Shown: positions 1,443-64,000 of the stretch, piece after piece
How the letters are laid out: each line of letters begins with the position of its first letter
How positions within the stretch are numbered: the stretch's first letter is position 1
Assembly: GCA_904063045.1 (NCBI GenBank)
Contig: CAJFCJ010000009.1
Location: forward strand, 1,550,968 to 1,614,967
Length of the DNA: 64,000 nt
Direction: 5' to 3'
From: Dimorphilus gyrociliatus
Taxonomy: Eukaryota; Animalia; Annelida
Notes under the pieces: model-generated
Told to the model about the DNA's origin: nothing
Database searches by the model: none
What the model saw: the letters and a program-made list of their open reading frames with translations, nothing else
Made by a program: the position numbers and the translations under genes

Positions 1443-2168
1443 TATTTCCAAATATTGTTTTCAAATTTTTGGTTCTATTTCTTATTAAAAGAAAAATACA
1501 TATCTAAATACTTTTTATTAAATTTAGTCAACGTTCTCAAATAATGGTTTTTTTCTATTATTATTGTTTTTTTGCTTCTTATATTTGAATCTTTGAAAGA
1601 AAGAACGTTCTATTTTTTTTATATAGAAAAGTTCTATGTTCATTTATTTTTTTTAAAAGAAAAGAAGGAATAGAACGTTTTTAAAAGAAAAACGGAAGAT
1701 TGTCTATTTTAAATTTTTTTTTCTTTGACATCAATTTACCGATCGAACGATCTACTTAATTTGTCTGTTTTTATATATATATATATATCATTACTGTATC
1801 GGACGAGTTTTTAAGGCTAATTAGACAGAATAACCTTATATGGTAAAAGTAACCTAGAGAACTAGAAAGTTCTAAAAAGTTGAGTAGTGTTATAAACTTT
1901 AAAAAAAAAAAAAAAAAAGTTGTCCAGACGGTTGACTTCACTAAAAACTGAGGTGAATATTATAGAATAGTCCTATAATATGTTCTATTCCAGACTATTT
2001 AGTTAATACAAAAAGACTATATGGTTGTTTTTTTTTCAGATTATAAAGGTTAATAGAGTTACAAACATTGGTCATTTAGTGCTCTTCTTTCGAGTTGTAT
2101 ACTTACTAGTTTTTCATTTATACTTTTTTCAGTTAGATTAAGATATTGAAACGTTTGAATTATTGATA

Positions 2169-3464
2169 ATGGATACTATACTGTCGACTTTAAGATTAAG
2201 GAAGAAGGTTAGGAGATCAGAATTGGAGAATGTTGAAGAATTTTTATCTTCTAATGAATCGTTGAGAAAACTTGATTTTGATACTTTTTGTTCTAAGGCT
2301 TTTTATTGGTATTGTTTTCCAAGAAAACCGGGTTTAGAATCTCGCTATTTTTTCAGGAAGCAAAATTTTTGTATGCCAAAAATTTTGCAACCTGATGGAG
2401 CGAGCGGAGATCACTTGGTACTTAAACTTAATAGAAAACGTCAATTGAAGATAAGGGATGTTAGGAAAACTAATTCAAAATTGGCTGGGCATCTTCTAAA
2501 TGTGGATGGGACTCGATATCAATTACCGAAAACTTTTAGACCCGACTCGTGCGTTACTTGCACAACGCTTGCTGCAAGGGATAATCTGTATGTTTTTGAG
2601 TGTCATAAAAGATCAAATACTGGACCTGTTGTCGATCAGAGATTGCAAAGAATTATTTTAGCCAGATTTATTAATGATAGCATACAACTTATTGGAGATT
2701 TGGAATTGGCATTATCAAACCAAAGTCACCATATTGACATTGCCCTAATTGCACCAGATTTAAAGTCGGTCTTGCTCATAACAAGTCAAAAAGTCTATTT
2801 AAACGAGGACGAGCAAGCTTATCCCAGAGTGGGTGCTGTCAATATACTAGGACATGCTGGAAAAATACCTTTATATACAACAGCACTATGGACCGATGAA
2901 GCTGTTCGAAATAGGAGAATATTTGCATATGACAATCGTTTCCCCAACAATGTCGTCTATTCATTTTCCAAGAACTATATCCAGTGCTACGATTTCGTTA
3001 CTGACAAAGTCATTCAAAAAGGTCAATTACCCAATGAGATACTTCTTAGAGACTATCGCGTTGTCCAGGTCACGACATCGGCTTCAGGTCGACTTGTATC
3101 TCTACAAATTTTTAGCTGTTCACCAAATATTGTTAAAAATATGACGTTGATTATTTCAACTAAAGATTTGCAAGCAATCCTCTCTATAAAATATCATGAA
3201 ATTTGTCCGAATCATTTAATTTACTGGAATACCAGCTATTTTCCAATATTTTCGGAATGTGATTCACTTATTGCATTAACAGCTTCTCAAAGATCAAATG
3301 ATGATAAGAGGAAACCCGATATAGTTGTATTTAAATTGCCAGTTATAATGGAATCGTTGAAATCGCTTTGCAGGCGAAAAGTTATAAGAACATTTCGATT
3401 ATCGCGTATAGAAAAGTTAGGTTTACCGTCGAAGCTAGTCAAATTCTTAAAGAATGAACATTAG
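2169..3464 (+). CDS. Intronless protein with C-terminal SOCS box (ElonginBC/Cul5-type adaptor)
   Basis: ORF of ~431 aa from the ATG at 2169. The C-terminus MESLKSLCRRKVIRTFRLSRIEKLGLPSKLVKFLK has a BC box (SLKSLCRR.V) and an LP..L..FL cullin box. The N-terminal part is beta-rich and not recognised. Confidence 0.75.
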   Translation: MDTILSTLRLRKKVRRSELENVEEFLSSNESLRKLDFDTFCSKAFYWYCFPRKPGLESRYFFRKQNFCMPKILQPDGASGDHLVLKLNRKRQLKIRDVRKTNSKLAGHLLNVDGTRYQLPKTFRPDSCVTCTTLAARDNLYVFECHKRSNTGPVVDQRLQRIILARFINDSIQLIGDLELALSNQSHHIDIALIAPDLKSVLLITSQKVYLNEDEQAYPRVGAVNILGHAGKIPLYTTALWTDEAVRNRRIFAYDNRFPNNVVYSFSKNYIQCYDFVTDKVIQKGQLPNEILLRDYRVVQVTTSASGRLVSLQIFSCSPNIVKNMTLIISTKDLQAILSIKYHEICPNHLIYWNTSYFPIFSECDSLIALTASQRSNDDKRKPDIVVFKLPVIMESLKSLCRRKVIRTFRLSRIEKLGLPSKLVKFLKNEH

Positions 3465-19338: not shown

Positions 19339-19440
19339 CTGGAAAAAAACGTAAATCTGCTTTTCATTCATAGTTTTATTTTAAAAGAATAATGTGGAAC
19401 GTCAGAGAAAAAAAATGGACAAAGACTAATAAAAGTTATG

Positions 19441-20569
19441 TTATGAATTAATTATTTCACAAGACTTTAACATATTGAGACATTTATCATAATCCGCTTC
19501 AAATAGTACGTCTTTAACTAATTTAGTACGATAGAATGATTTAATATAATCCATATGTTCAATAATGTTTTTAACTCCATGAAAGAGTTGCACTTTAGTA
19601 TAACTTACAAAGTCAATTATTTCAAATAATCTTTTATGATAGTTTTTACCGTGTACAGATTGAAGATAGCGTGTAAATGCCAAAGTAAATCTTTCGTATT
19701 GTCTTTTAAAATGTGGATTTTCAACAGTTGGTTTTAGAGCGTTAAGGGCAACTATGAATGCTGTTTCTTCAAATGTCATATTTATATTTTGAGCACGAGA
19801 ACTAATCTTTTCTTGACATTGTACTAGTGATTCATCTGAAAAGTTAACGATATCTTCTCTAGAAACCTCTAAAGAATGATCAGCGTCAAGATTTATGATT
19901 ACTCTGTTATCTTTCCATAGAGCCCCTCCTGAGCAGGCTATTATAAAATGAATTTCATCTTTCTGAGCAATGACTACTCTACAAAATTCATCAAAATCAA
20001 GATCGTGCAAAGCGGGTAAACTTCTCAAGCCTTGTACAAAACGAGTTAGAACAGTTTCATGAACTTGTTCCATGAATTGCATAAAAACACGTCTTCCATC
20101 AATATCAGTTCCTGTTACCTTATAAATATCCATAAAATCATTTCTTGGAAAACTACCTGATTCTAAACTCTGCACTGCCTGCTTAAATTTTTGTTCAAAG
20201 CCTTCCATTTCATTATGCCAACATATATTTAAAAAAAATGATAAAGAGTCTCTACATTTGATAATAACATCTTGCGAATCCGTATAATTTACTAAATACG
20301 GAACTGTTTGTTGTTTTCTACTTCTCTCAACCAACATTAATCGATTCTCAGCATGTCTTTCTTTAGAATATCTCCCCATTTTTATAGACGTTTTAGACAT
20401 TCCCACCTCTAAACATCTAGCATATCTGCAATATTTACAAACGAACGTAAAATGATTCGTAGGATTGCATTGTTGCCTCTTATTAATACAATAGAAACCA
20501 CTGGACTTTCCGCAACTTCTCCGAAAGAATACTTTACAAGCTTCGCATGTATACGCTCCATAGTGGAAG
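19441..20569 (-). CDS. NR terminal cassette C12
   Basis: Acceptor attttttacag|C at 20569; FHYGAYTCEACKVFFRRS; 1129 nt. Confidence 0.9.
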
Positions 20570-24914: not shown

Positions 24915-25054
24915 CTGTAAAATAAAAAACAACCCTAAATACAGGTAACCTTTATTCCAATAAATGCATATATAGTTTTAACAGGGACAGTAACTTTATA
25001 CATTAAATCTCCAAGAACACAAGTAAAATGAAGCATTTTTATAAGTAGCTTTTC

Positions 25055-35700: not shown

Positions 35701-36820
35701 TCAAAACAGTTCAAGATTTTCTAATTTTTTTATATTTTCTTCTAAGTTACCAACTTGCCATAGACATTTAAATATGTGACGATCGTAAACATAATCAAGA
35801 TATTTAACATTCTCTTTCCAATACTTTTGTATTATACTTGATTGTTCATTAAAATAAGCTAGTGAGTTAACTATAGTAAGTAGACGATTGTGATGTTTCG
35901 ATTCGTACTTATTCTTAAAATACCTATCCATAGTTAATAGTATACGATTATTTGCAGCAGATAAATGGGGAAATCTTTTTTGTGGTCTAGTAAGGTTGAG
36001 TGCAATTAAAAGCACTAATTCTTCGGTAGTTAAATTAAGTTTTGTTAATTGCCTATGACATTGTTCCTGTATCTCAACTATCTTTTTATCGCTGAGATTT
36101 ACAATATCACTTTTATTTACTTTCAAACAGCTCTCATCTAATTTCAATTCATATTTATCTGCCTGCCAACTTTGTATCATTATAAAACTGATAGCTATAT
36201 GAACTATGTTTGAATTCAAAAAGAAATTCATCAGGAAGTTCTCTCTTGATAATTCCTTCATACCTGGAAATTGCTGAGTGTTTGCTAATAATCTTTTAAC
36301 GGCTACTTCTAAGAATTTCTCTGATAAATTTGATATGTGCTTTCTACCGTCAACTTCAACGCCTGTTACTTCAAGAACGTCCATAAATGTGTCTTTGGAG
36401 AATGTACCACACTTAGTCTCATTCATGGCAGTATTAAGTTTAAATTGAAAATCTGCTATTTCCTTATTCCAACTAATACTTTGAATATTATTGAAAATAG
36501 TAGAACATTCTACTAATAAATCATCGCAATCCGTAAAATTCATCAAATATGGTACTTTCGATTGTTTATATTCGATCGTATCTAACTGTGCTTTATTTGA
36601 AAGTTTTCTCTTGTTGGTATACCGTCCTATCTTTATATTACATCTTGCCATACCGACTTCCACACATTTATTATATCTACATTGTGAACAATTGAATAGA
36701 AATTTATCTGATGGAAAACATTGATTTCTGCCGTTCAGACAAAGTATTTCTGTTTTTCTATTCTTAATACGACGAAAAAATACGTTGCAGGCTCCACAAG
36801 TATAAGCTCCATAGTGAAAA
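35701..36820 (-). CDS. NR terminal cassette C23 (atypical P-box CGACNV)
   Basis: Acceptor cctcttcttag|T at 36820; FHYGAYTCGACNVFFRRI; 1120 nt. Confidence 0.88.
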
Positions 36821-37093
36821 CTAAGAAGAGGAAAGACGATATATTCTTTAAAAATATTCAGATATTTTAGATATATATGTATTAAAAATTTGTACTCATA
36901 ACAATGTCATATATATATTATTTGCATAATAAACAATTCCATTCTTATGTTGAACTATAAATCTATTTTAAAAAACGATAGATATTAATATAAAAAAATA
37001 TGACTCATTGGAATTTTTGTCTAAATACACGTTTAGCTATGTCGAAATATGTGCCATATGTTTCACAAGAGAACAAATTGAACAATTCTTGTA

Positions 37094-38225
37094 TTACGAA
37101 ATTTTCAATGTCATTAATGAATTGATAAGGGAGGTTGCATTTGATTCAAGCCATAAAACTTTGGACAAATCATCGTCAAATAAATAATTATAATAATCAT
37201 ACTCTTCTTTCCTACAGTTTTTCCTTTCAATTAAACCCTGTTCTCTCATATTTGATATGAATTTTACTATTTGAAATAATCGTTTATGATAAAATTTTCC
37301 GTGCCTACTCTCCAAATAGCGTGTGAGAGCAGACATTATATGATTATGAATAGCTTTAAGATGTGGATATTTTTTTCTAGGTGTACATAAAGTAGCAGCA
37401 AATAATAAAACTGTTTCTTCATAATTTAATACTATTTCGTCGAGATCGTTGTGGAAATGCTCCTGATTGTGAACGGTATTTTCACCTGATAAATTATACA
37501 ATTGGGCCTTGTGTATAGCCAACTCGTACTCTCCAAATTTCATTACAGAGTAATCATCTTTAAAATAATGAGTACTTGATAGATTTAATACAAGCGATAG
37601 ATCGTCGGGCATTCTTAATATATTCATAAAAAAATCTCGTTTGTCTAATTCTAACATACCGGGTAGTTTAATGACTATATTTAGTAAACGGTGAAAGCTT
37701 GTTCTAAGTACTTTCTCCCCTAGTGAAATCATACATTTCCTACTGTCCATTTCAACTCCTGTTGTTTGCAAAATGTCGTTGAAAGCCTCCCTGTGTATCA
37801 TATTGTGTGAAAAGATATTTGAGATTTTATTAATATCATCTCTTAAGCCCTTAATTTCTTTTGGCCAATCAATATTCATCATATCGGAAAACAATACTGA
37901 AAATGTGACAATTGTATCATCAACCTCGGTATAATTAAACAGATAAGGGACTAAGAGCTTTTTTTGGTTAATATCGTTAGCTATCTTATCATTTTCCAGG
38001 CGCTTCTCCACGCTATATCTACCGATTTTGGCAGCTTTTTTACACATTCCTATACTAATACATTTATTATATTTACAAGATTTACAGGTAAATTTGTAAT
38101 CTGTAGAAGGATTGCATAAACCTCTTCCAGTTTGACATTTCACTAGAGATGATTTCCTATCAGACTTCAATGCTCGATAGAAAAAGGTTTTGCAAGGGTG
38201 ACAAGTATTTGCTCCATAATGATAG
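37094..38225 (-). CDS. NR terminal cassette C24 (most proximal; atypical P-box CHPCKT)
   Basis: Acceptor atttaaacag|C at 38225; YHYGANTCHPCKTFFYRA; 1132 nt. Confidence 0.88.
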
Positions 38226-38909
38226 CTGTTTAAATTGAAATTTGTCTAGAATTAAGATCAATAGGGTAATTCCAAATGACGTATGAATATATTATTCTCA
38301 TTTCTATTTATATACACATTACCAAGTAAACTGGTTCAATAACCTGAACCTGGTAATTTGTATAATGGACCTATTAACTACCTTTTACAAAAGAAAGAAA
38401 ATTTGTGTTGTTGGCACAAACTACTAAACAGCGGTGATAATTTCCAATCTTATTTATCACATTAAATATAGATAGTTACTTTATCAGAATGAATAGCTGG
38501 CTGTTATCAATGATATTTTAGGATAACTAGTATTGATTAAATTTTCTTTACAATAAAATTATTTTCATATTTTTGGGTTAAATATCAAAACATATTTTTT
38601 ACATATATATTTACGAACAGCCGACAGTCATAACAATATAAATTAATTAAATAAAATGTTAACGACTTGCGTGAATGATAATTTAAAGAAAACGAGAAAT
38701 ATTCTATTTTGTCTATAAGACTTAAAGATGGCGGTTTTTACTGTGGAATACTTTCTTTTACAATTAAGATTGTCTCGACAACAAAGCTTTATAAAACACT
38801 AACAATCGCAAATCGATTTAACCTCTCGTTGGAGGTAAGAATATATACAGGACTAACAAAACGAATATCACCCACAAAAATCAATTGTGTACACGAATAC
38901 ATAAAGTGT

Positions 38910-38917
38910 ACATACCC
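38910..38917 (-). other. Phase-2 5' splice site GG|GTATGT of the shared NR exon
   Basis: The minus strand reads TCT GG|GTATGTAC. Its phase complements the 1-nt overhang of all 24 cassettes. Confidence 0.85.
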
Positions 38918-39130
38918 AGATGATGGACCTCCACAAACTTGGCATGGAGGTAGAGTTGTTTTTTGTTGCTCCGTAGCTTCTTCAAATGAGTCCAATTGCT
39001 TGACAAGACTATCTTCTATAGATATTATAGTAGAAGAGGGTGAATCACTTTCGCCTTCAAGCAGAGCCAATAGATCATTTAGATCATTATCGCTGCTACT
39101 ATCTTGCGGGCTTGGGTTTGTTGAAGCCAT
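38916..39130 (-). CDS. Shared first coding exon of the NR locus: acidic A/B region + first half of zinc finger 1
   Basis: ATG at 39130. 71 codons + GG (215 nt): MASTNPSPQDSSSDNDLNDLLALLEGESD...TTLPPCQVCGGPSS-G. Followed by the donor GTATGT at 38915. It is the only CxxC-G exon I found upstream of any cassette. Confidence 0.9.
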
Positions 39131-39627
39131 ATTTAAAAATTATTTGGCAGTAATATCAGCGAATCGGTGTTTTAGTCAAATTACGCAGTTTATGTATACC
39201 TGCCAACACCTACTGTGAGATAATTCAGTTGAGTTTCGCATACTTTCACCAGGTGGTGCTGTTAGTCTCAAGTACGAAAGATATTTTCGAATTGTATTCA
39301 AAATCAGATTACATGAATTTATTATATTTTATTAGGGAATTTATTGCCTTAAATATAATAATGATTAAATTAACTATACGAAAAAATCAGGTCTTTTAAC
39401 ATCACTTCCTTTTTAATTCCGGATGTTTATACCGATGGAACGTCCAAGAATTTGTTGCTAAGATATTATTTAATAAAAATCAGCCAACTCCGTCCATTTT
39501 TTGTGATCAAGCTCTTGCAAATAATTTATTAGTTTTTATAATCCTTATCTACTATCAAGATTTGAACGGTTTAATACCGATCTAAATAATTTCCGTAACC
39601 TTGCCACATTGCGAAAGGGGATGCATA
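39131..39627. promoter_or_regulatory. Putative bidirectional promoter region between NR exon 1 (-) and CFAP20DC (+)
   Basis: About 500 bp between two head-to-head ATGs; RFX half-site-like GTTGCTAAG at 39454. The TSS cannot be seen in the sequence. Confidence 0.55.
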
Positions 39628-42045
39628 ATGTCCGATAATAATCCTCTTGAAGTGTTCAATTCACAATCGAAGACATTGTTAGAAAAATGGAATATACCGT
39701 CACACGTAAAACCTGTAATAAATTTTATTATAATTTCGTTTATTTCCTTGTTAAGTTAAACGTTGATTTTTCCAGACATTCGATAAAGAGGGAAGATGCA
39801 ACGTTCACAATCTAACAGGTAGCGCAAGAACTGTTCAAATGACCTGGCAAGCTGACAAATCGCTTAAAGGTTTTAAAGATTAATTATATTTGTTCTGACA
39901 ACTTATTATTTATACATTTATCTCTTGTTGAAGATGGTGCTAGATATAACTACGTTGTGCTCCAAACGTTTATACCAGAATTTGAGGAATTTGCCTTTGA
40001 AATCAAGTAATATTAATTAATAATTTGTAAATATATTGTACATGTATATTTTTTCTTATTTTCACAAAAGTGTGTCATTGCCGAACGAAAGTAATAAGCG
40101 CAGACTCTTCTTTACAACGAATGCTAAAGATATGAAACGAGAGACTTTTCATGCTAGAATTCCATTAGGAATAGTTAAGCGAAAAACGGTAAGAGGTCTT
40201 TTTTTCTATATACCATTTACGAAAATACTTATATAGTTAATATTCATTTAATTTTTAGTGGTTAAACTTATGTGTGGACGTTATTTCATTTATGAAATTA
40301 TGGAATGAGGAAAATTTTAATGCCATCGAAAATTTGTCAATTTCGGCTAATTGCAAACTTCGTAGAATCTTTGTTCTAAAACCGAATACAACAAACACTG
40401 GTTTGTATTATATACATAATTTATACTGTATATACATTAGTATGCATAAAAAGCATAAAAATTCTTATTAAATTATATTTAGAGTCTTCCGCATCATCAG
40501 ATATTAGAATACCCAAGCACTTTGAATATTCACATTCTTTAAATCACGAAACGCAAGTAAGTAAACTTATCTGATTTAGTATTTTAAAACGGACTTTACG
40601 CCTCTTTATTCCTATTTTTCTCTTTTACAGCTCATTGACTATTTTTGCATTGTTAGAGAATATGGCTCCATTGAACTAAGAATCGGTACGTATAAATTTT
40701 TCTATTATGTTATTGATACATATATATTTTATTCAATAGGCAGTGGAGAAATGAAGCAACCTCATCCACCTTCTACAATGCCAAATCAAAAGCCACGACC
40801 AGGTCGAAAGGTTAAAAGTGGTGGTAAAGGGAAAGCAACGTCTGCACAAGATGAAAATAGTAAGTTTTTTCTTTGTTTAAAATTCTTACCTTAATTTATC
40901 TATTTATTTTTTTTTTAAATAGAAAATTTAAGCGAAGAATTATCTGATGTTATCGACACTTTAAATAAAGGGGACAAAATTAACAAGACGTCTGACACAG
41001 AGTAATTTACTGTTGAAAACACTTTCTAATAACTTACATAATTTGAACGTACTTTCACTTATTTAGCGAAAAATCAGAACCTACTTTATATACTTACTCT
41101 TCACAACCTGTGGCTGTTCAACGAAAGAGCCCTTCAACGAAAGCTATAAGAAATCGCCAAGTGTTTAAAGTGATATTACTTTCTTTCTAAATTTAAAAAT
41201 TTTAAGGGTGTTCTATTTTCTAAAGCAGAATATCAAGATAGACGACAACGACTTTGTTTCCGATTCTGACGGAGATTCAGATAAAGAGAGAAGACATAAA
41301 GATGACAAGTGCCAAGAGAAACCTAAAAGAACTATGCTAAAACGTAGTGTTAAGAAAAACACTTTAAAATTAAGCTCTTATAACAACGTTGTCCAACAGA
41401 AAGTTTGTATATTGTAGACTCTGCAATAAATATTTAATGATTTATATTTTTTACTACAATTGTTAAGAAACCAACCGATGCAAAACTTTCCGTCCAAGAA
41501 TATACAACAGTTGGTTCTTTTGAGATAGATAGCATTGAAGCAGACATAATTAGAGCTATGCAAAAGGAAGATGAAGAAACCTATCAGAGCAATAACTTTG
41601 AGAGGTAAATAAAACAATGTGTATGAGAATTTTTATATCATAATGTTTTCATTCGATTTAGGTTTAAGGATCATACTTTTGGAAAAGACCCTGAGGAGGA
41701 TCACTTTGTCGAAACTAACAATCATTTATTAGTTCAAGATGTACATTTGTACAAGGACGAAATTAAAGATCAGTCTGGAAGATGGAGTACTGATTTTTTC
41801 AGTCAAAGTCATGTTCGAAATGATCTCAGAGAAATGAATAAGAAACGTATGTATTTAAATATAAACAGGTATTCTGTTTTGTAAAATAGTATTCTTTTTT
41901 TTCTGTTAAAGATTCGTCCGGCCCGGTCAAACAAAACTCTTCAGATTCTTCTAGCGACGAGGATGAGATGTTAGACTTGTATTTTGATCCAACTTTAAAT
42001 TGTTACTTCGATCCAGACTCTAAGATTTACTATGAGCTGAAATAA
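39628..42045 (+). CDS. CFAP20DC: CFAP20 domain-containing protein (C3orf67/CFAP20DC-like), multi-exon, C-terminal OCRE-like motif
   Basis: Spliced manual translation: MSDNNPLEVFNSQSKTLLEKWNIPSH|TFDKEGRC...|YVVLQTFIPEF...|KRRLFFTT...HARIPL...|WLNLCVD...SANCKLRRIFVLK; ends LDLYFDPTLNCYFDPDSKIYYELK*. Both ends match remembered C3orf67 motifs. The true start may lie in an upstream exon. Confidence 0.85.
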
Positions 42046-44526: not shown

Positions 44527-47500
44527 ATGGAAAAGGTAGAACTTGAGGAGCCTCTTCCAGAAATACAATATCGTAAGGCAACTAGTGCCGAAATGTATGC
44601 TTTAAAGAAGCAAGCCGTACAGTATTATAAAGAAAATGGTGTCCCTTTAAAGATGGAAAATGTAATGAATGAAATGTTCTACGATAGACCGGATGATGTT
44701 TTTGGACATATAGTGATTATATATTATTTTTATACAATATAATATAATCTTTATAATATAATTCATATTTTAGGCAAACTATTTTGAGTCTTTTGCAAAA
44801 GCAGTTACAATAAACAAAGTGAGTTCAATAATTATAGCCGTCTCTTTCAATTATGAGATTCTTATCACTTCTAAATTAAGGTTGAACTTCTGGATACTTT
44901 CGATTCAAGGGGTCAACAATCGTTAACAACTAATTTGTATGGAATAGTTAGGAATAATTCTAAACTGCTGGCAGAAACACAATTAACTAGCTCCTCTCGT
45001 CTTCCCGATTACTCTTCACCAGAAGAAAAAGAGAATGATGCAGTTGAACGACAAGAATCATTAAAGGCTTCTATTGAGTTAATTAATGATAAAATATCTC
45101 CAGTTTTAATAGGAATTGACGTTAACGAACAGAATCAAATTGATGAGGAGATATCAAAAATACTCTTACCTTTACAAGAAGCTCTGGATAAAGAGAGACA
45201 AGAAGAAGAGAATAAGAAAAAAGAGGAACAAGAGAGAATAGAAGCGGAAAAGGTAGTCAGTGCGAAAGATAAAAGAAAATCTCCCAAAGTCAAAGGAAAA
45301 GGAGCTGCTGTGGTTATTATACCAGATGAACCAAAAGACAAACTAATTCCTGGTTATGAATCTGGTTGCATTGTGTCGAAAAGTGTTTGTAAAGCGGGAT
45401 CTTTTGTTAAAAATTGCGAATTATACGAATATATTGGGAGTTTGACCGGAAAAGATCAATTTAAGATTCCATTACCAATGTTTACAATTTTCTATAGTGG
45501 AAGAGCTGCACCTGGAAAACAGAATTACGTTAAAGAATATATGATTATACCATCCCCAACTAAAACGCTTTCTCAGGTGTGGCAACAATTCGTCGATACA
45601 TATTATATTATTTATTCAATTATTTAATTTCCTTTCCCTTCTATGGTAAAATTAAACAGGCCGTAAAAGAGAGCGTACAGATCTATAACACCATAGGAGA
45701 TATCCTAGCATCTAAGGCCGCGGTAATTATAAAAACTTTCTATTTTATTATCATAACTAACGGAATAAAGATTACTAATTTCATCACGAAAAAGCCAAAT
45801 TTATCCTTGTTTTAATAATTTATAAGAAACAAATCAATTTCATTTACAAGGATGAAGAAATTTATTACTAATTTAATTAATCCATGCCTCTTCTCACCCA
45901 CCAAAAAGAGGTTTAATTTTTTGTTTACCTCAATCTTTTGCGCTTTCAATATAAAATCAAGTTAATTTGGTCTTGAATGCAATAATAGACATTAATCAAT
46001 TAACATAACAGAATAATTTGACGCCATGTTTTTTTGATAAAAAGAAATTGACTTATTACTCTTTTGGGATTTTATTTTAAGTTTTTTGTTTTGCTTTCAC
46101 AATTTTTTTTACAGCTTTCATCAGCAAAAGGCAAAAAAATGCCGAATGTGAGTGTGCTTATTTTATATAAAAGAAAAAAAGAGATAAATAGAGAAAACTG
46201 AAATAGATAAAAAAAAAAGAGAGTGAGAGAGACAGAGAGAGGAAGAGAAATATGATTTACTCTCCTCCCTTCTCAATGTCTCTTCTATTCACCTTCTCTA
46301 TCATTTTTTTCTTTTATTATTATTTTTATTCAAAATTTTGTTTATTTCTTCAGTTTTTTATTGATTTTGTTCCTACTTTAACAAAAATTAAACAACATTT
46401 AACAGAAACTGCACCAATTTCAAACAATTCATTATAATTCATTTTCATAGATATTATCTATATAAATGCACTTATATTCTAGGCCAGCGATAAAGGTGGT
46501 AAAAAGCAAAATTCTATTATCAATGAGGGACCTTACGTATGTGTACCTTTGCTAATTCTATCTGCCATTTTATCTTATCGGTTTACCCTTTTTCGTATTT
46601 CTTTAATAGTATTTATTCATAGTTTTTTATATTTTGTTCTTTCTTCTTTCCATTCTTTTTCTCTATACGTCGAATTTGTTAAATTTTTTTTTATTAGTAA
46701 TATTAGTATATAGCTATTTGCAAAATGTATGGATTATTGGATAATTTATTTACCTATAGATTACATCTAAGCTGGTAAATGATACTGGTGCGTTTTGCAC
46801 ACCTTTGGATAGGATTGAACAAGGCTTAGATCTTATTCAAGATGCTATGAAACATCTTAATCTAGAATCTGGAACCGATTTCTATTTCGCGTTAAATTTA
46901 AGTGGTCAAGAAGTTTTTGATTATGTAAAAAATACTCTTTTATTTAGTATCTTATTGATAAATCAATGAGATATTCTTTTTCTTTATAGGAGAAAGGCAA
47001 ATATGAAATTGTTGCTGGAATTCAAAAGACTGGAGATGATTTAGCTGATGTTTTAAATGACATTTTGAATAAATACCCAGGAGTAATAGCTTTAATCGAT
47101 CCTGTAAGAAAGGAGGTTAGTAAATGAAATGAATAGCAATATCTTTCATGATTATAGAAAGCAAATTAGCAATATGAAAAAGAAAAGAAACTCGTTTTCT
47201 CTGCTTTAGCTTAAAACGCGAGTTTTTCTATAAATCAATGCAAAGTAATTGCGTATTTTAAAAGAAAAGACTATAGGTTCAGTTATATACCTTATAAAGA
47301 TCAAATTGTAAATACCTTTTATATATTCAAAACAATGCCATCAATTGATTGATAGCAGTTAAAGAAAAGGGAGACAGCAACAAAGAGATCAATATAAAAT
47401 ATAATGAAATATATCTAAATATTCTAACAGGAGAAGCAGGCTTGGCAAAAAATAAGTGAAAAAATCTCACCAAGATGTTATATTGGAAGGAATGTGAACA

Positions 47501-55531: not shown

Positions 55532-58500
55532 TTAGACGGTCATTAGACCGAGAAAGGATGAAAGTGTCGCTATAAGAGATGCGAACCCTATTATCATCCA
55601 ATTCGACCTAATTGTTCCAGCCTTGGCAGAAAATCCATTCAATATTTCCTTATTACATTTGTCAGTTGTACAGCATTTTCGGCATTCCTTCTTTCCATTG
55701 GCAGTTTGACAATTTTCAGCTTTATTTATTGAAGTACAATCGCTTGAATTGAAGCATCCTCGTGAATGTTCAATTACGTTATTTTCTTCGTATCTGTACA
55801 TCCAACAAGTTTGACCAAGACCCGGTATACAAAGACTGGCAGTTTCATTAGATTGGGACGGTGGTGTCTTACATTCTGTTGATCTATTACAGTAGAAGCA
55901 ATTAATTCCGCATTGCGTTTTTTCCAAAGTAGGTGAAAAACCAGCAGAACATTTGGAACATTCAATTGGTCTGTCTTCGCAAGCTTGACAATCTTTCAAG
56001 TCCGAGCAAGGCAAACATGTTTTGTGATCGTCCTTAAGACCGAAACCAGATTTACAGCTTAAACATTTTCCTTTTCCTGTAGCATCAGCACCAGTGCAAG
56101 TGGAGCATTCAACTACTGCTGTTAAATCTTGGCATAGCGAGCATCCTTTCTCTGCGTTAATTCCATAGCCAGATAAACATTTGTTACATTCAGCTTTGCC
56201 ATTTTTGTACGAACAACTCATGCAATTTGATGGACATTTTGTGCAAGTTTTGGCAGTGTTCACTGTATAACCAGCATCACATTGAGAACAATGAGATTGC
56301 TTGTTAACTCTACTGCAAACAGCACAATTATCAGGGCAGGCAGAACAGGTTTTCACTTCATTTAGAATGTATCTGGCTTGACACTCGGAGCATTTCAATC
56401 CTTGACCTGATTCTTCGGAGCATTTCACACAGTATTTTGGGCATCTAGCGCAACTAGCTTCTTGTAAAGTAAATTCAGAGTTACATTCAGTACAGATAAG
56501 AATTCCATTCGTTTCTGGACATTTTCTGCAGTTATCAGGGCATTTATAACATTTCTTGTCATTGACTCTTAAGCCGTAAGTTGCATCGCATTTGTCTGTC
56601 TTACATTCTGTTTTTCCTCCAGTTGCATAATCACATTCAAAGCAGTTGTCAGGACACTTCATGCATGTTTTATCAGTTGTTGTAAGAGCGTATCTAGAGT
56701 TGCATCTCGATGTCTTACATTCAGTTTTACTAGTATCAGAATTGAAAGTACATTCAATGCAGTTATCGGGACATTTCATGCAAGTTTTGTCAGTTTTAAG
56801 AGCATAGGTAGAATCGCATCCACTAGAACTGCAACCAGTCTGTCCAGTTCCAGTAAGAGTGCATGTGTGACAGTTCGCTGGGCAAGCTTTAAAGACAAAT
56901 ACACTTTAACTTATACTGTAAGCAATAATTTAGCTCTCAATTAACTTACCGTAACAAACTTTATCTGATGCTTGTAAGGCAAATCTCGCCACACATTGGG
57001 TACATTCCAATTTTCCATTGCAAGCTAAGCAATTTTGTGGACAATCTATAAAAAATTTTCGAATGTTATTTGTTTAATTTGTTCCTTTTCTATTATAGTT
57101 ATGATCTTACTTCCGCATTGTGAATCAGAATCCTTAACAGCTTGTTTAGATGGGCATGTTCCAACAACGCATTTTGGTGTGTCTGGATTAACAGAGTCAA
57201 AAGTACAGGATGTGCAAGTATTACATTTGACGCAGGTTTTTTGATCGTTTCCTGGATTCTGGGTGTAACCAGCTTTACATTGATTATCATTACATTTGGT
57301 CTTTGAGATGCCGGTGTCATAGACACAAGATAGACAATTTTCTGGGCATACTACACAAGTTTTAGTGTCATCTTTCATTGCGTAACCAGCTTTGCAGACG
57401 GTACAAGTCGATGTACCATCGGTTGCAATGTCACAGTTCTTACAACCATCGGAACAAGCATAGCATAATCTATCATTGTATTTAAGTCCATAACCATCTT
57501 CACATTTTTGGTCGAAACATGTCGTTGTATCTGAACAATGCTTGCAGTTGGTAGTACAACCAGAACAGGTTCCAACAGCTCCACTTGTAATACTATAATA
57601 ATCCATCCTGCATGCTCCAGTATAACATTTTGAACCAGACGTAGCTGTATCGTAAAAACAATCAGCGCATCCAGCAGGGCAAGCTATACAGGTTTTATCA
57701 TTTGGATTTTGTACATATCCAGAATCGCATTGTTGAATGTTACAAACAGATTGAGATGACTGCCAGCTGCACTTGGCACAGCTGCTAGGGCAACTATTGC
57801 AAGATTTATCAGCCGAATTCATAACGTAACGATCCATGCAAGTACTACACTTTGTCCATGATGAAGATTGTGTATAAGTGCACGATTTACAGTTAGTTGG
57901 GCAACTATAACAAGAGAGGTCACTTAATTGAGTATAGGCGCTGTCACATTGGCCAGATAAACATCCCATCATATTTGTTGTTGTTGAAATAGAACATTGT
58001 TTGCATCCAGTGTAACATTCTACAGTGGAGTGAAAGATAATGAAATTAATTTTTCTATAAATGAAAATAATTCTCTTGTACTTACTAAGACAAGTATTTC
58101 CTGTAACTTCCTGATAAGTACCAAAACATTTACCACTGTCACAGATATTAGTTCCAGATGAATCAGTACATTCTTCACATCCAACAGGGCATGCTGTACA
58201 AGTACCGTCAGATGGTCTTCCCATTAATTTGTTGCATCCATATTTACCGCACTTTTTAGCGCCATTGTGATAATAGCATGTCTCACAATTACTTTGGCAG
58301 GCTGAAAATAGATATTACTTTTTCAGATTTCAATAAGAATATTCTAAAAAACTTACCTGTGCATGTATTATCTGTTGTACTTTGGACATAGCCATGCATA
58401 CAGAATCCAGACAAACAATAGCTGGTTGAATCATCATTATTAACTCCGCAATGTAAACAACCAGCAGGACAGTTGACACAGGTTCCATCTCGTTTCATAG

Positions 58501-61500
58501 CTTGGTTCGATCCACAAGTAGTAGCTAGTTTGTAAAATGGAAAAATTAGTTATATATTCTTATTGTTTTTTTTAAGCGCAATCATACCTTTGCAGGTTTG
58601 AGATGATGCTTCATAAACGTAACCAACATTACAAGCATTGCTGTTACATTTTCCTGCTACACTGCAAGCACTGCAGTGTGCATCACATTCTGTAAGATAA
58701 AAATTGATCAAAATTGAACCTTTTACAAGAGTTATTTCCCCCTAACTTACGTTGACAAGTACTATCAGTATGCAAGAAATAACCGGTTGTACATTGGTTT
58801 GCATTACATTGTCCAGCAGTTGTACATTGGCCAGTGTTACAATTTGCGTGACATCCTTCACAATTAAAGGATCCAGTAAGGAAATAGTTGGTCATACACT
58901 TTCCATCATTACATTTTCCAGCGAATCTTCCACTAGCATCACATTCATGAGGTTGGCACTTATTATGGCATTCTATTATAGTATGATACCAATTAAACAT
59001 GATATTTTCCATACAGAAAAAAATGAGTACTCACGAACACAAGTATGACTGGACTCATCATATATGTAACCATTCTTACACATATCTCTATCGCATTTAC
59101 CTTCTCCCATTTTATCACAATATATGCAATTAGAGGCGCATTGTCCACATGTCTTATCTGTTTTTCTTCCATAATTGGAGTTACATTTTCCTTCGTCACA
59201 CTTTCCTGCTCCTTCGGTGTCGCAAGAGGCACAGTTGTCGGCACATTCTGAAAATCAATTATTCTCATTAGCTTTTTTTAAATAGTATAAAAAGTTTCTA
59301 CTAACTTGAACAGGTACTTTCATCAACCCAAACATATCCAGACATGCACATATGCTTATCGCATTTTCCTGATCCTTCTCTATCACATCTCTTACAATTG
59401 GATGCACAGCCTAGTAGATTGAAAGAGTTGTATGTTTTTATATGTAAAAGTTTATTATTAAAATAATACTTACTGCTTGTACAAGCAAAGGAATTGCCGG
59501 CATGATTTGCATGAGTTTTTCCATCAATACACATCCAATCGTCGCATGCACCACCTCTTCCACTTGCAATACATTTATTAGTTTGACAGTTTCCATCGCA
59601 GTTTGCTACGCAGACACGATTAGTATGATCGAAGAATTGTCCCGACGGACAATAGCCATAGTTGCATTTCGATGCAGCAACGCATTCACCTTGACTATTT
59701 GTTGCAATGCATCCGCTTTGACAAGCTGAATAATAATTTCAATGAAATAATGAAATAAGTATTTTTCACAGTTTATACTCACTGATAGTGCAAGTGTGTT
59801 TATCAGTATTATCGATTCCCTTATTGTTACTGCATGTTAAACAATCATTATCTGCCGCACAGGTCGTACAGTCAGTGGGACAAGCTAGCAAACAATCGAT
59901 ATTTTTATCAAATTTTCTAAATTTTTATTAAGAGCCTTACTTGCACATGTTCCATCAGCAACACCAGTTGGATCAGAATGATATTCATTTGCAGCGCAAC
60001 TAAGGCAGTTACCAGCTGCTCCCGCGCTACAAGTTGTGCAGCTTGGATCGCAAGCTAATTAAAAAATCGTAATTTAAAAAATGTCTATCAGAATCTAGAC
60101 TCAGATATCGCCATACCTGCACAGGTTCCTTCGGCTCCAGGAGTATCATGAAAATTTTTTGCAGGACACGTCAAACACTTGTCTGCTCCAGTTTGAGCGC
60201 AAGTTGCACAACTGCCAGTACAGTCTGTGAATGAAACTCTTGTAAATGCCACAATATATTATTATAATCGTCTATTAACGTATACCTGTACATGCTCCAG
60301 CAGCTCCGTCGTTAGTAGCGTGAAATTTACCATCTATACAAGTTCTACAGTTAGAAGCTCCAGCAGCAGTGCAAGTTTTACAGTCGCTATGGCAAGCTAA
60401 AAATAAAATTGTTATGAAAAAATTCATTTGCTGTTATTTTTTTAAATACCTGTGCAAGTTCCTTCTTGCCCAGATTGAACAGACAGAAATTTGTCCGAAG
60501 CGCAAGTTAAACATTTATTTGCATTTCCACCTTCGCTACAAGTCGCACAACTACTATCACAAGCTGAAAATGATTATTAATTATTACAAAGATTTGCTGC
60601 AAAATAAAGCAATTCAATTACCAGTGCATGTTCCATCAACGCCAGGATTATTACTTTTCACAGAGTTAGTAGGGCAGGTCAAACATTTGCTAGCATCTGC
60701 AGGTGCGCTACAAGTTGCACAAGTAGAATCACAATCTGTAAAAGAAATAGACTTTTACTATTTATTAAACGAATTAATACAATTAATTACTTGTGCATGT
60801 TCCATCTGATCCAGGAGCACTATGGGCCTTTCCACTCGGGCAAGTTAAACACTTACTAGCACTACCCCCTTCACTACATGTTGCACAAGAGGCATCGCAA
60901 GCTGTAAATTATAAAATTTATGTGATGTATCTTATATTCTAATTCTAATAAATGATAAAATACCTGTACAATATCCGGCCGTTGAAGATACTTTTGTTAA
61001 AATAGCATTACTAGGACATGTCAAACACTTATCGCTGTCACCGCCTTTTTCACATTTTGCACAAGTAGAATGGCATTCTTTATTTTAAAAAAAAAGAAAA
61101 AATATTACTTTTGATTACTTAGACTTTATGCTTTTGATAAACAGATACAAACTTGTACAAGTTCCATCATTTCCGCTAACAACTTCAAAAACGTAATTAC
61201 TAGCACAGGTTCGACATTTTGCTCTATCTTTGGTCGCCGAGCAGGTTAGGCAAGTTGGATGACATTCTAACAAGAAAAATAAATATATTATGTATTATTT
61301 TTTTTATGAAAAGATTTTAAAAAATTGAAAATTTACTTGTACAAGTTCCGGGATCTCCAGTTTGAAGCCAGCCACTGAAGCACGACTTACAATCATTCGA
61401 TGTTGCACCATCACATGTCTTACACGAAAAGTGACATGCTGAAACGAGAAGATATAAGTCAAAATTAATTTTCGAATTATTATATACATACGTGTACAAG

Positions 61501-64000
61501 TTCCTTCTGCAAGGTCAGATGTTGATTTTTTATAAGAATCTCTACATGTTCTGCATTTCGAAGCTTCGTTTGTCGTGCTACAAGTTGCGCAAGAATGATG
61601 ACAAGCTATTGAAAGAGTAATTATCTAGAATATATAAATATTTCACTTATAATAACTAGTTACCCAGGCATTTTCCAAATGCGTCCCCACTATTTTGAAT
61701 ACTGTAAGTTAATCCGGGTAAGCATGATGTACAGTGAGCGTCACTACCCGACTGCGCGCAAGTCAAGCAGGCTGCATTACATGCTGTGCATTCTCCTGTA
61801 ACGCCTACCGCAGCAAGACCATATCCAAGTTTACAAGTTGTACATTTAGTGGCATCAGCAGCATCAGTGCAAGTTGCACAATTGCCACTACAACCGGCTA
61901 TTCAGAAAAAAATTGTTTAATCATTACTTTGAATATACCTGAACTACAGATAAGTTATTAGTCGAATTGAGTAAAATACTGACTTGTACAGTAAAAGTCG
62001 CCACTAGTAGCTGAGGCAATTCGACCAGCTACGCACGATCTACATTTATCAGCTCCAGAGGCACTACACGTTTTACATCCAGCAGTACATGCTTTAAAAA
62101 GAGTTTTACTTTTAGTAATAGCCTAACGAGTTTCTTATGAAGTTCTACCTGAACAGGTGTTTCCATCGAGAAAAAATCCATCGTTACATTGACCAGCGTT
62201 ACACTGGCTAGCAGTTGTACATTGCTTAGCTTTGCAGTTGGAGTCGCAAGCTTAAAAATTGCATTTAGTGTAATTAATATAAATCATAATTTTATTGCGT
62301 TGGAAAATTTTTGGATTTACTTACCAATACACATCTTTGAAGAACTATCATAACCTTGAGGTGATGGACAATAAGCGGCTCCGTCACATTTTCCTACTCC
62401 TTCTACTGAACATTTCGTGCAGCCAGTTTGACAAGCTTCGCAGGCCCTTGTTGATGGATTCATTGCATAACCAGCAGTACACTTTCCATCATCACATTTA
62501 TTATTTCCTCTAATGTCACAATTGTTGCAATTGGTTTCACAAGCTATATTATTAAATTTAAAACTTATTTAACGGGTAATCAATATAAACTTTATAACTT
62601 ACGAACGCAACTTGTATCACTAGCTCTCTGGAATTTTGGTTTACAGGTTGTACATTTAGCTTTATCAGCTTGACAGTCACCACAGTTTGTGACATCGCAG
62701 GCTAAAACATTTGAAAAGTAGTTAATTATTTTTGTAGTACAAAAGCTAAAAAAATTAAAATACGTTCGCAAGTAAAATCACTCTTTCTTCTGTATCCAAG
62801 CTGGCATTTACCAATATCGCATTTTCCCACTCCATTTGCTTCGCAAATATCACAGCCACCAGAACAGGCTTCACATGTATGATCGGATTTGTACCTTTTT
62901 GTAATAATACATTTATTTTTGTCGCATTTTCCAGCTCCTCCACTTGCTCCTTGGGTAGCACATTGACCTGATTCACAACTTGCATGGCATGCTGTTTGGG
63001 TTATACAATAAAATGAAATAGTGCTACTAAATTTAACTTCTGGAATAGAAATCGGCTGTCTTACCAACGCATGTTTGGTCGCTGGTTTTGTACACATAGG
63101 GAGATGAACATTGTCCTGCATTACATTTATTTTCCGCGGTACACTGACCAGAGTTACAGTTAGTATCACAAACTGAAAAATAGAAGCTTTTGTTAACAGT
63201 ATTCACAAGTTTGATATACGAAATTACCTTTGCAGGTGCTGGTACCAGAATCAAAGAAGGTATTTCCAATACACTGACCAGACATACATTTTCCAGCCTC
63301 AGTACATCTTGAACAATGAGTGGCTTGACAAGCTGAACAGGTTTGGGAACCCGAAACATATGCGTATCCATTTTCACATCCGTCAGAATCACATTTTGTT
63401 CCACTGCTGATGGTGTTGCATTTTAGGCAGTTGCTACTACATCCGATGCAGGTTAAACCATCACTACTCCTTCTAAAACGCTGAGCACAACCTCTATCCA
63501 GACATTTTCCAGTTGTATCGCATTTAATACAGTTACTTGGACAAGCAACACAAGCTCCGGAATTATAAGCATATCCATGTTTACATTTGTTAGAATCACA
63601 GGTAGCAGCCGATTCGTCAGAATTCATGGAACATCTAGCGCAACCTGCAGGACATGCAAAGCAACTCCTGTCTCTCTTTTGTGTGTATCCCGGTTTGCAT
63701 CCTCCTGGTTTGCATTCAGTATTATCTGTTCCAGTAACTTGTGTACAGTGATCACAATTACTTGGACAAGCCAAACAAATCAGATTATTGTCTTTAACTT
63801 GATATCCCAATTTACATTTATCACATTTCGCAGCACCCAAAGAAGCGCAAGTTTCACAGTTGGCTCTATCTGCGCATTCATCACAGGCCGTATTGTCAGC
63901 TTTCTTTTTGTAACCGGGCAGACAAGTATCGCATTTGCCTGGTCCATTCGTAGCACAGGTCAGGCAGTTTGAGGTGCAAGCTTCGCATAATTTTGTTCCA
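55532..64000 (-). CDS. Large furin-like (FU/CxxC) repeat surface protein with terminal Ly6/uPAR-like domain and GPI-type tail; 5' end outside window
   Basis: Dozens of CPxNCxxC / CHxSCxTC repeats over many exons. The last exon has CFYC...TCW...SRGC...CRKCCTTDKCN followed by small residues and a hydrophobic end (WMIIGFASLIATLSSFLGLMTV). Confidence 0.85.

Follow-up and report, generated by a model that had tools for sequence, protein, structure and literature searches.

A probably shared half-finger first exon and 24 nuclear-receptor cassettes at one locus of the annelid Dimorphilus gyrociliatus

In counts of nuclear receptors, one receptor normally stands for one gene. A 64,000-nucleotide stretch of the D. 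gyrociliatus genome (assembly GCA_904063045.1, contig CAJFCJ010000009.1, positions 1,550,968 to 1,614,967; hereafter the window) raises the question whether this count always applies. Its minus strand carries one 215-bp exon followed by 24 intact single-exon nuclear-receptor cassettes arranged head to tail (38225–3647). Here, we ask whether these cassettes have 5′ ends of their own or depend on the single exon preceding them.

One short exon followed by 24 receptor cassettes

We located the cassettes by reading the minus strand from stop to stop, which yields 24 open frames of 374–417 codons between 38245 and 3647 (Table 1). The G+C content of the array is about 30%. Near the start of every frame we find the motif xHYG..TCEACK, and all 24 cassettes show a pyrimidine tract and a phase-2 YAG that stops one base short of the codon in front of HYG. 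The single base after this YAG completes a GGN glycine codon. At the other side of the presumed junction, the 3′ end of exon 1 reads ...TTLPPCQVCGGPSS (CQVCGGPSS) followed by GG/GTATGT, a phase-2 donor.

The immediate surroundings agree with the original prediction, which had given the shared exon a length of 215 bp and had placed a divergent CFAP20DC gene less than 500 bp upstream. Exon 1 extends from the ATG at 39130 to 38916. The ATG of the divergent gene lies at 39628, 497 bp from the exon-1 ATG, and two of its consecutive exons match Pfam CFA20_dom (profile positions 96–125 and 129–169). A search of the whole assembly (77.9 Mb) with the exon-1 peptide gave a single match on contig C9, which is exon 1 itself. 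Exon 1 has no Pfam hit; the common part is an acidic receptor N-terminus. An Rfam scan of the whole window gave no match. Outside the array, the gene next after the CFA20-domain gene, likewise on the plus strand (44527–46969), shows weak Enolase_N and Enolase_C matches and may encode an ENO4-like cilium or sperm enolase, and positions 55532–64000 (minus strand) contain long frames of cysteine-rich CxxC modules (furin/VSP-like repeats).

Table 1. Features of the locus in window coordinates, with counterparts in the relative species; the sister array is given in coordinates of its own contig
Feature	Position	Strand	Size	Remarks	Counterpart in relative
Convergent SOCS-box gene	2163–3464	+		Downstream boundary of locus, 182 bp beyond C1 stop	
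Cassette C1	3647–4760	-	370 aa	Array end; AATAAA 24 nt past stop	
Cassette C2	5157–6279	-	373 aa	74% identity to orthologue	On contig L016
Cassette C3	6626–7751	-	374 aa		On contig L016
Cassette C4	7961–9080	-	372 aa		On contig L016
Cassette C5	9401–10520	-	372 aa		
Cassette C6	10988–12107	-	372 aa		
Cassette C7	12356–13475	-	372 aa		
Cassette C8	13660–14785	-	374 aa		
Cassette C9	15056–16175	-	372 aa		R12
Cassette C10	16454–17573	-	372 aa		R10
Cassette C11	18210–19338	-	375 aa	zf-C4 profile positions 13–70; modelled ligand-binding-domain fold	
Focal spacer C12–C11	19339–19440	-	102 bp	AATAAA 19380–19375; U-tract and CAG ~19355–19339	
Cassette C12	19441–20569	-	375 aa		R9
Cassette C13	20829–21939	-	369 aa		R7
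Cassette C14	22199–23321	-	373 aa		R6
Cassette C15	23768–24914	-	381 aa		R4
Cassette C16	25055–26168	-	370 aa	Young C16–C20 group	R3 (C16–C20 clade)
Cassette C17	26708–27821	-	370 aa	Young C16–C20 group	R3 (C16–C20 clade)
Cassette C18	28471–29581	-	369 aa	Young C16–C20 group	R3 (C16–C20 clade)
Cassette C19	29968–31081	-	370 aa	Young C16–C20 group	R3 (C16–C20 clade)
Cassette C20	31465–32578	-	370 aa	Young C16–C20 group	R3 (C16–C20 clade)
Cassette C21	33057–34179	-	373 aa		R2
Cassette C22	34396–35506	-	369 aa		R1
Cassette C23	35701–36820	-	372 aa		
Cassette C24	37094–38225	-	376 aa	Atypical P-box CHPCKT	
Intron, exon 1 to nearest cassette	38226–38915	-	690 bp		
Shared exon 1	38916–39130	-	215 bp	ATG at 39130, 60-residue acidic N-terminus, LPPCQVCGGPSS + GG, donor GTATGT phase 2	Single orthologous exon
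Divergent-start gap	39131–39627		497 bp	Between two start codons	
Divergent CFA20-domain (CFAP20DC-like) gene, first exons	39628–40402	+		Upstream boundary of locus	Syntenic
Sister array	contig C15:79323–109248			Two halves: complete tandem genes, then exon-sharing cassettes	

Four cassettes (C24, C12, C11 and C1) were tested against Pfam zf-C4, and all match profile positions 13–70 of 70 with E values of 6e-10 to 6e-15. Because the match starts at position 13, the portion left out is exactly what exon 1 encodes, the end of which corresponds to the missing C-x2-C-G-x3-S-G of the profile. Read off the two sequences together, exon 1 and a cassette give the spacing C-X2-C-X13-C-X2-C, that of the canonical nuclear-receptor first finger. 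Once exon 1 is added, the cassettes would possess both zf-C4 fingers expected of the nuclear receptor superfamily. Pfam Hormone_recep gave no match on the cassettes. An AlphaFold model of C11 averages a pLDDT of 78.6, rising to 82–95 over most 10-residue blocks of its ligand-binding domain, and a Foldseek comparison with known structures retrieved the ligand-binding domains of VDR, PPAR, LXR and DAF-12 (TM ≤0.73, E values down to 9e-6). In this model, the C-terminal 270 residues adopt the predicted fold of a receptor ligand-binding domain. The recognition-helix motifs are unusual in the two cassettes next to exon 1 (35701–38225), with CHPCKT in C24 and CGACNV in C23.

All 24 reading frames are intact, and the zinc-binding cysteines are invariant across all copies. 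Among the young copies C16–C20, dN/dS is 0.23–0.39. Between species, dN amounts to 0.19–0.33 in the 56 codons before an internal Met versus 0.42–0.59 elsewhere. Purifying selection thus acts on the cassettes. With conservation highest in the 56 codons ahead of the Met, and with their cysteines invariant, these codons should be translated. Yet 21 of the 24 cassettes have an in-frame stop 5–29 codons upstream of the acceptor and no ATG in between; an in-frame upstream ATG is present only in C14, C11 and C4. Translated codons that lack a local ATG imply that, in these 21 cases, the start codon must come in via the acceptor.

The same data bear on the reading of the locus as 24 separate genes that are translated from the internal Met or a chance upstream ATG and encode finger-less or one-finger receptors. 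Public models do start at the internal Met (C7, C8 and C9) or in an 11-codon exon within the C16–C15 spacer (DgyrCDS7639), and the three cassettes with an upstream ATG could be read this way. Conservation peaking in untranslated codons would make no sense, however, 21 cassettes offer no usable ATG, and the conserved Met falls within a motif, universal among receptors, with which the DNA-binding domain ends. Moreover, the identical phase-2 acceptor of all 24 cassettes, found also in a relative (see below), would be left unexplained. We therefore consider this reading very improbable.

The public models themselves are inconsistent with the structure of the cassettes. DgyrCDS7638 (986 aa) is a chimera of C12 from its internal Met, C11 and C10; it uses the true acceptors of C11 and C10 and donors inside cassettes, one of them 25 nt before the C12 stop, so that its first intron (window 19339–19465) contains the focal spacer. 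DgyrCDS7639 (685 aa) fuses cassettes C15 and C14 behind the 11-codon exon, located at 25036–25002, 18 nt past the C16 stop. The odd exon and donors of these two models may reflect cryptic splicing of genuine read-through transcripts or may be products of the gene predictor. Of three further NCBI proteins, two represent C7 and C8 but begin only at the Met that follows the DNA-binding domain, and the third is C9 cut to 270 residues. Neither of the two collections searched holds a protein for exon 1, C1–C6, C13 or C16–C24. The original prediction had expected the cassettes to be miscalled as separate one-finger genes. The locus is indeed miscalled, but as chimeras, truncations and gaps.

Spacers and the first exons of paralogues

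If each cassette were a complete gene, the spacers should harbor the missing first exons. Measured from the stop to the first exon base, the 23 spacers range from 102 to 649 bp with a median of 278 bp. The six short ones listed in the original prediction are C12–C11 (102 bp), C16–C15 (140 bp), C8–C7 (184 bp), C23–C22 (194 bp), C4–C3 (209 bp) and C22–C21 (216 bp); the distances originally given for them (100, 138, 182, 192, 207 and 214 bp) differ only by the AG dinucleotide.

We searched for first exons in two ways. A regular expression (C..C, five residues, two bases, GT) detected no CxxC mini-exon over the array, and its only match in the window is the exon at 39130–38916. A 15-residue half-finger HMM, built from 17 family exon ends, scores every real first exon of the family at 15.7–31.6 bits, whereas its best score in six frames of the 23 spacers and intron 1 was 2.5 bits. 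As a positive control, both methods together recovered the own first exon of 15 of 15 paralogues (nine tandem genes on contig C15 and six singletons). The claim that the spacers contain no CxxC mini-exon, previously based on the spacers that had been read, therefore extends to the full six-frame scan (0 of 23 spacers by regular expression, HMM ≤2.5 bits). We also applied a looser scan for any ATG-initiated open stretch ending at a phase-2 GTR donor. Candidates occur in 11 of 23 spacers in sense and in 10 of 23 in antisense orientation, which is chance level, and none encodes a Cys pair. This result likewise speaks against 24 separate genes.

The paralogues used as controls show what complete members of the family look like. 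Comparison of a cassette with the whole assembly revealed about 45 full-length relatives. From these we took a further array, located on contig C15, and six single loci on contigs C7, C5, C28, C36, C196 and C20. Nine consecutive genes (109248–94243) that make up the upstream half of the contig C15 array each have an ATG-initiated half-finger exon 60–200 bp before the acceptor, and so do the six single genes. The second half starts with one exon 1 at 93160–92970, which shares 50% identity with exon 1 of the window and is followed by about seven cassettes without a first exon of their own. Cassette C24 of the window groups weakly with the first of these sharing cassettes (SH-aLRT 84). With one of the sharing cassettes of contig C15 as the query, a word search returned only a Logan protein of 51% identity and no spliced model. 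Five public paralogue models, DgyrCDS6098 and four others, splice exactly at the half-finger junction from their own first exon, which argues that the intron position is real; DgyrCDS6098 maps at 100% identity to contig C7 and belongs to the same protein family as the cassettes (36% identity).

These genes also provide a yardstick for the length of a spacer. The smallest family spacer that holds a first exon measures 363 bp (on contig C15, where the ATG follows 190 bp after the stop and a 104-bp exon precedes an intron of 70 bp), and 14 of the 23 spacers in the window are shorter than that. The smallest first exon and intron of the family together take up ~165–175 bp, more than the 102 and 140 bp that the shortest pair of spacers offers. 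For the nine spacers of 363 bp or more, the case rests on the missing exon and not on length. The original prediction, according to which the spacers are too short for own 5′ ends, is thus right in that no spacer contains a first exon, but the argument from length covers only 14 of the 23. Unlike tandem two-exon genes, the copies in the window do not each have an ATG-plus-half-finger exon, and the sequence data support the view that the cassettes lack independent coding 5′ ends.

The array in a relative

A relative is represented by Logan contigs of the runs SRR23372216, SRR23372228, SRR23372229 and SRR23372231, with L011, L014 and L016 coming from the last three, and a profile search retrieved many Logan proteins of 310–320 residues with 40–70% identity to individual cassettes. 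The relative has a single orthologous exon 1 (65% identity) with the same end, TTLPPCQVCGGPSS + GG/GTATGT, and the CFA20-domain gene is located upstream of the array in this species as well. Its first intron measures 2.1 kb. The relative has at least 18 cassettes, 13 on one contig and 5 on another, all of which have the phase-2 acceptor. The spacers are as short as 123 bp, and no half-finger exon was found between the cassettes.

We assigned orthologues with a quick tree (SH-aLRT 91–100), and the resulting pairs are collinear in both species (Table 1). On the second contig of the relative, the order is the C5–7 clade followed by the orthologues of C4, C3, C2 and C1. The five cassettes C16–C20 correspond to one copy in the relative, which has no counterpart of C24 or C23; its cassettes R5 and R8 are without a clear orthologue in D. 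gyrociliatus. Synonymous sites are saturated between the two species. Because collinear orthologues persist despite this divergence, the exon-sharing layout appears to be old and maintained.

We also compared the non-coding parts of the locus between both species, covering all 23 spacers as well as intron 1 and the promoter region. Only the promoter region aligns (39396–39626, 75% over 244 bp); in intron 1, which contains no half-finger by HMM in six frames, the DNA is not conserved. Such a pattern would fit a single conserved control region. This is weak evidence, since the block lies nearer to the start of the CFA20-domain gene and promoters can turn over.

The layout in the relative, together with the data on the frames, is informative for two further readings, both of which we regard as exceedingly improbable. 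According to the first, the cassettes are dead duplicates of a two-exon gene consisting of exon 1 and C24; against this stand the 24 intact frames, dN/dS values well below 1 and collinear orthologues kept beyond synonymous saturation. The second assumes an operon-like unit resolved by spliced-leader trans-splicing. Spacers of ~100–300 bp that end in an acceptor do resemble nematode intercistronic regions, and spliced-leader operons of nematodes and tunicates have similar intergenic distances of ~100 bp ending in a strong acceptor. However, genes in operons carry their own start codon, which most cassettes lack (21 of 24), and a leader would not provide the missing Cys pair. In addition, neither spliced-leader trans-splicing nor operons occur in D. 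gyrociliatus according to the published genome analysis (PMC7854359).

Proposed joining of exon 1 to the cassettes and its implications

Based on these observations, we propose that exon 1 and the array form one transcription unit with one promoter region, one first exon and 24 alternative terminal exons, to which we assign a probability of roughly 0.8. The promoter region, head to head with the CFA20-domain gene, would drive a single first exon. This exon encodes the start codon, the acidic N-terminal domain and, for zinc finger 1, the first pair of Cys residues. Through its phase-2 donor it would then be joined to one of the 24 terminal exons, each of which would complete finger 1, including the P-box, and contribute finger 2, the hinge, an entire ligand-binding domain and the stop. 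Up to 24 different receptors with one common N-terminus could be produced in this way. We infer the joining itself, its route in cis and the definition of terminal exons from the anatomy of the locus, whereas that anatomy, the missing first exons, the closed frames, the selection and the layout in the second species can be observed directly. That exon 1 is shared as such is highly probable and is the part of the proposal of which we are most confident. As to the route, we lean towards a join in cis over one in trans. In cis, each cassette would be defined as a terminal exon by its acceptor and its own putative poly(A) signal. In the shortest spacers, these signals would overlap the U-tract of the next acceptor within ~40 nt, and use of one would preclude use of the other.

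The candidate poly(A) signals do not stand out from background. AATAAA is present in 17 of 23 spacers in sense versus 18 of 23 in antisense orientation, so that the hexamer is not enriched in the spacers over the antisense control, and five spacers contain neither AATAAA nor ATTAAA; the tail of C1 has an AATAAA as well. A poly(A) site for each cassette is therefore only putative. The sole AATAAA of the focal spacer lies 36 nt before the C11 acceptor, and a similar geometry (36–40 nt) is found in the C16–C15 and C18–C17 spacers. With this distance, the cleavage site of C12 and its U-rich downstream element would fall into the branch-point and U-tract region of C11.

Promoters of D. gyrociliatus are reported to be narrow, and CTCF motifs near start sites to be typical of this species (PMC7854359). 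A CTCF-like site with 2 mismatches is located at 39246–39260, ~115 bp upstream of the exon-1 ATG. We rejected this motif as a promoter marker: the excess in the window is weak (3 sites versus 0.64 expected), another site lies inside the coding sequence of C2, and the pattern has no sites in the spacers and none in the locus of the relative.

Along with the poly(A) result, further points count against a single transcription unit. First, joining in cis to distal cassettes requires introns of up to 34 kb (C1), compared with a median intron of 66 bp in D. gyrociliatus (PMC7854359). Second, we found no signal that could explain the choice of a cassette: complementarity between intron 1 and the spacers, as expected of docking and selector sequences, shows no excess over shuffled sequences, and the only strong U1-type motif (similar to the TSA motif of mod(mdg4)) between exon 1 and the array end lies inside the coding sequence of C7, with none in intron 1. 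Third, the junction did not turn up in the public sequences searched. A word search with C11 returned paralogues only and no exon 1–cassette junction, a word search with exon 1 returned only the genomic ORF of the relative, and a profile search of 1.84 billion representatives yielded no protein joining exon 1 to any cassette.

Long introns would be avoided, along with the skipping of up to 23 poly(A) sites, if exon 1 were shared but joined in trans, with the cassettes or groups of them using their own promoters in or near the spacers. In mod(mdg4), where the variable 3′ exons have promoters of their own, more than 30 isoforms are produced like this (PMC6237743, PMC12692577, PMC4387717), and promoters of less than 150 bp (PMC7854359) could fit into the longer spacers or overlap the upstream cassette. 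On the other hand, no spacer is conserved with the relative, unlike the region upstream of exon 1, and the 102- and 140-bp spacers already have to accommodate the previous 3′ end and the next acceptor. The position of the sole strong U1-type site, in C7 and not in intron 1, does not favor this route either. Gene-to-gene trans-splicing like that of mod(mdg4) is not known beyond a few insect loci. We consider a join in trans from internal promoters unlikely. It nevertheless affects how promoter marks would have to be read: the original prediction named such marks inside the spacers as its refutation. For a shared exon 1 this does not hold, because the variable exons of mod(mdg4) have their own promoters and still share exons by trans-splicing (PMC6237743, PMC12692577); promoter marks in the spacers would therefore not argue against exon sharing.

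The closest known parallels to a single unit with alternative terminal exons are lola, mod(mdg4) and, more loosely, fruitless of Drosophila, in which common 5′ exons are combined with one of about 20–30 alternative 3′ terminal exons. As in lola and mod(mdg4), we find a common 5′ part with a single donor and variable exons without a first exon of their own, arranged as a long tandem array of terminal exons with own acceptors and stops and short spacers. In both cases the variable part bears the DNA-binding specificity, and automatic annotation is confused. The resemblance is one of architecture and not of protein homology, since lola and mod(mdg4) combine a BTB domain with C2H2 or FLYWCH fingers whereas the annelid locus encodes a nuclear receptor without a BTB common part. 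Two further differences concern the variable exon: in the annelid, the splice site falls inside a zinc finger and leaves neither part able to form a DNA-binding domain by itself, and the exon encodes a near-complete receptor of ~370 aa with its own ligand-binding domain. Finally, mod(mdg4) is known to be trans-spliced (PMC6237743), whereas in the annelid a join in cis is only the likelier of the two routes.

Other systems share individual features. Tandem complete receptor genes, such as those in the upstream half of the contig C15 array and in the expansions of molluscs, nematodes and copepods, belong to the same family, have the same intron position and arose by tandem duplication, but each copy keeps its own half-finger exon whereas 24 copies share one in the window. 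UGT1A and the clustered protocadherins likewise produce many proteins from one variable exon and a constant part. Their polarity is reversed, with variable first exons that have their own promoters and a constant 3′ part, whereas the constant exon comes first in the annelid. In the literature searched, we came across no nuclear-receptor locus with this architecture.

With the sister array included, the locus could represent a splice-choice system, in which one promoter and one activation domain serve 24 receptor bodies, with a single one or a small number of these selected in each cell. At the sites where a poly(A) signal meets the next U-tract, cleavage factors and U2AF would then compete. 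While a competition between 3′-end formation and acceptor use is a plausible switch, we put forward the splice-choice system as a whole only as a tentative idea. If true, diversity of the Dscam or protocadherin kind would be applied to ligand-sensing transcription factors.

For the family, at least 24 receptors in the window and about seven at the second locus appear to depend on shared half-finger first exons, and the layout seems to be a maintained design and not a fresh accident. Gene counts, orthology tables and expression tables for D. gyrociliatus are wrong at these loci. Under the proposed single transcription unit, receptor diversity would be set by the choice of a terminal exon after transcription start and not by 24 promoters. 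This annelid has two-exon genes that stand alone, complete genes in tandem and exon-sharing arrays, three stages within one genome that make the origin of lola-like loci testable.
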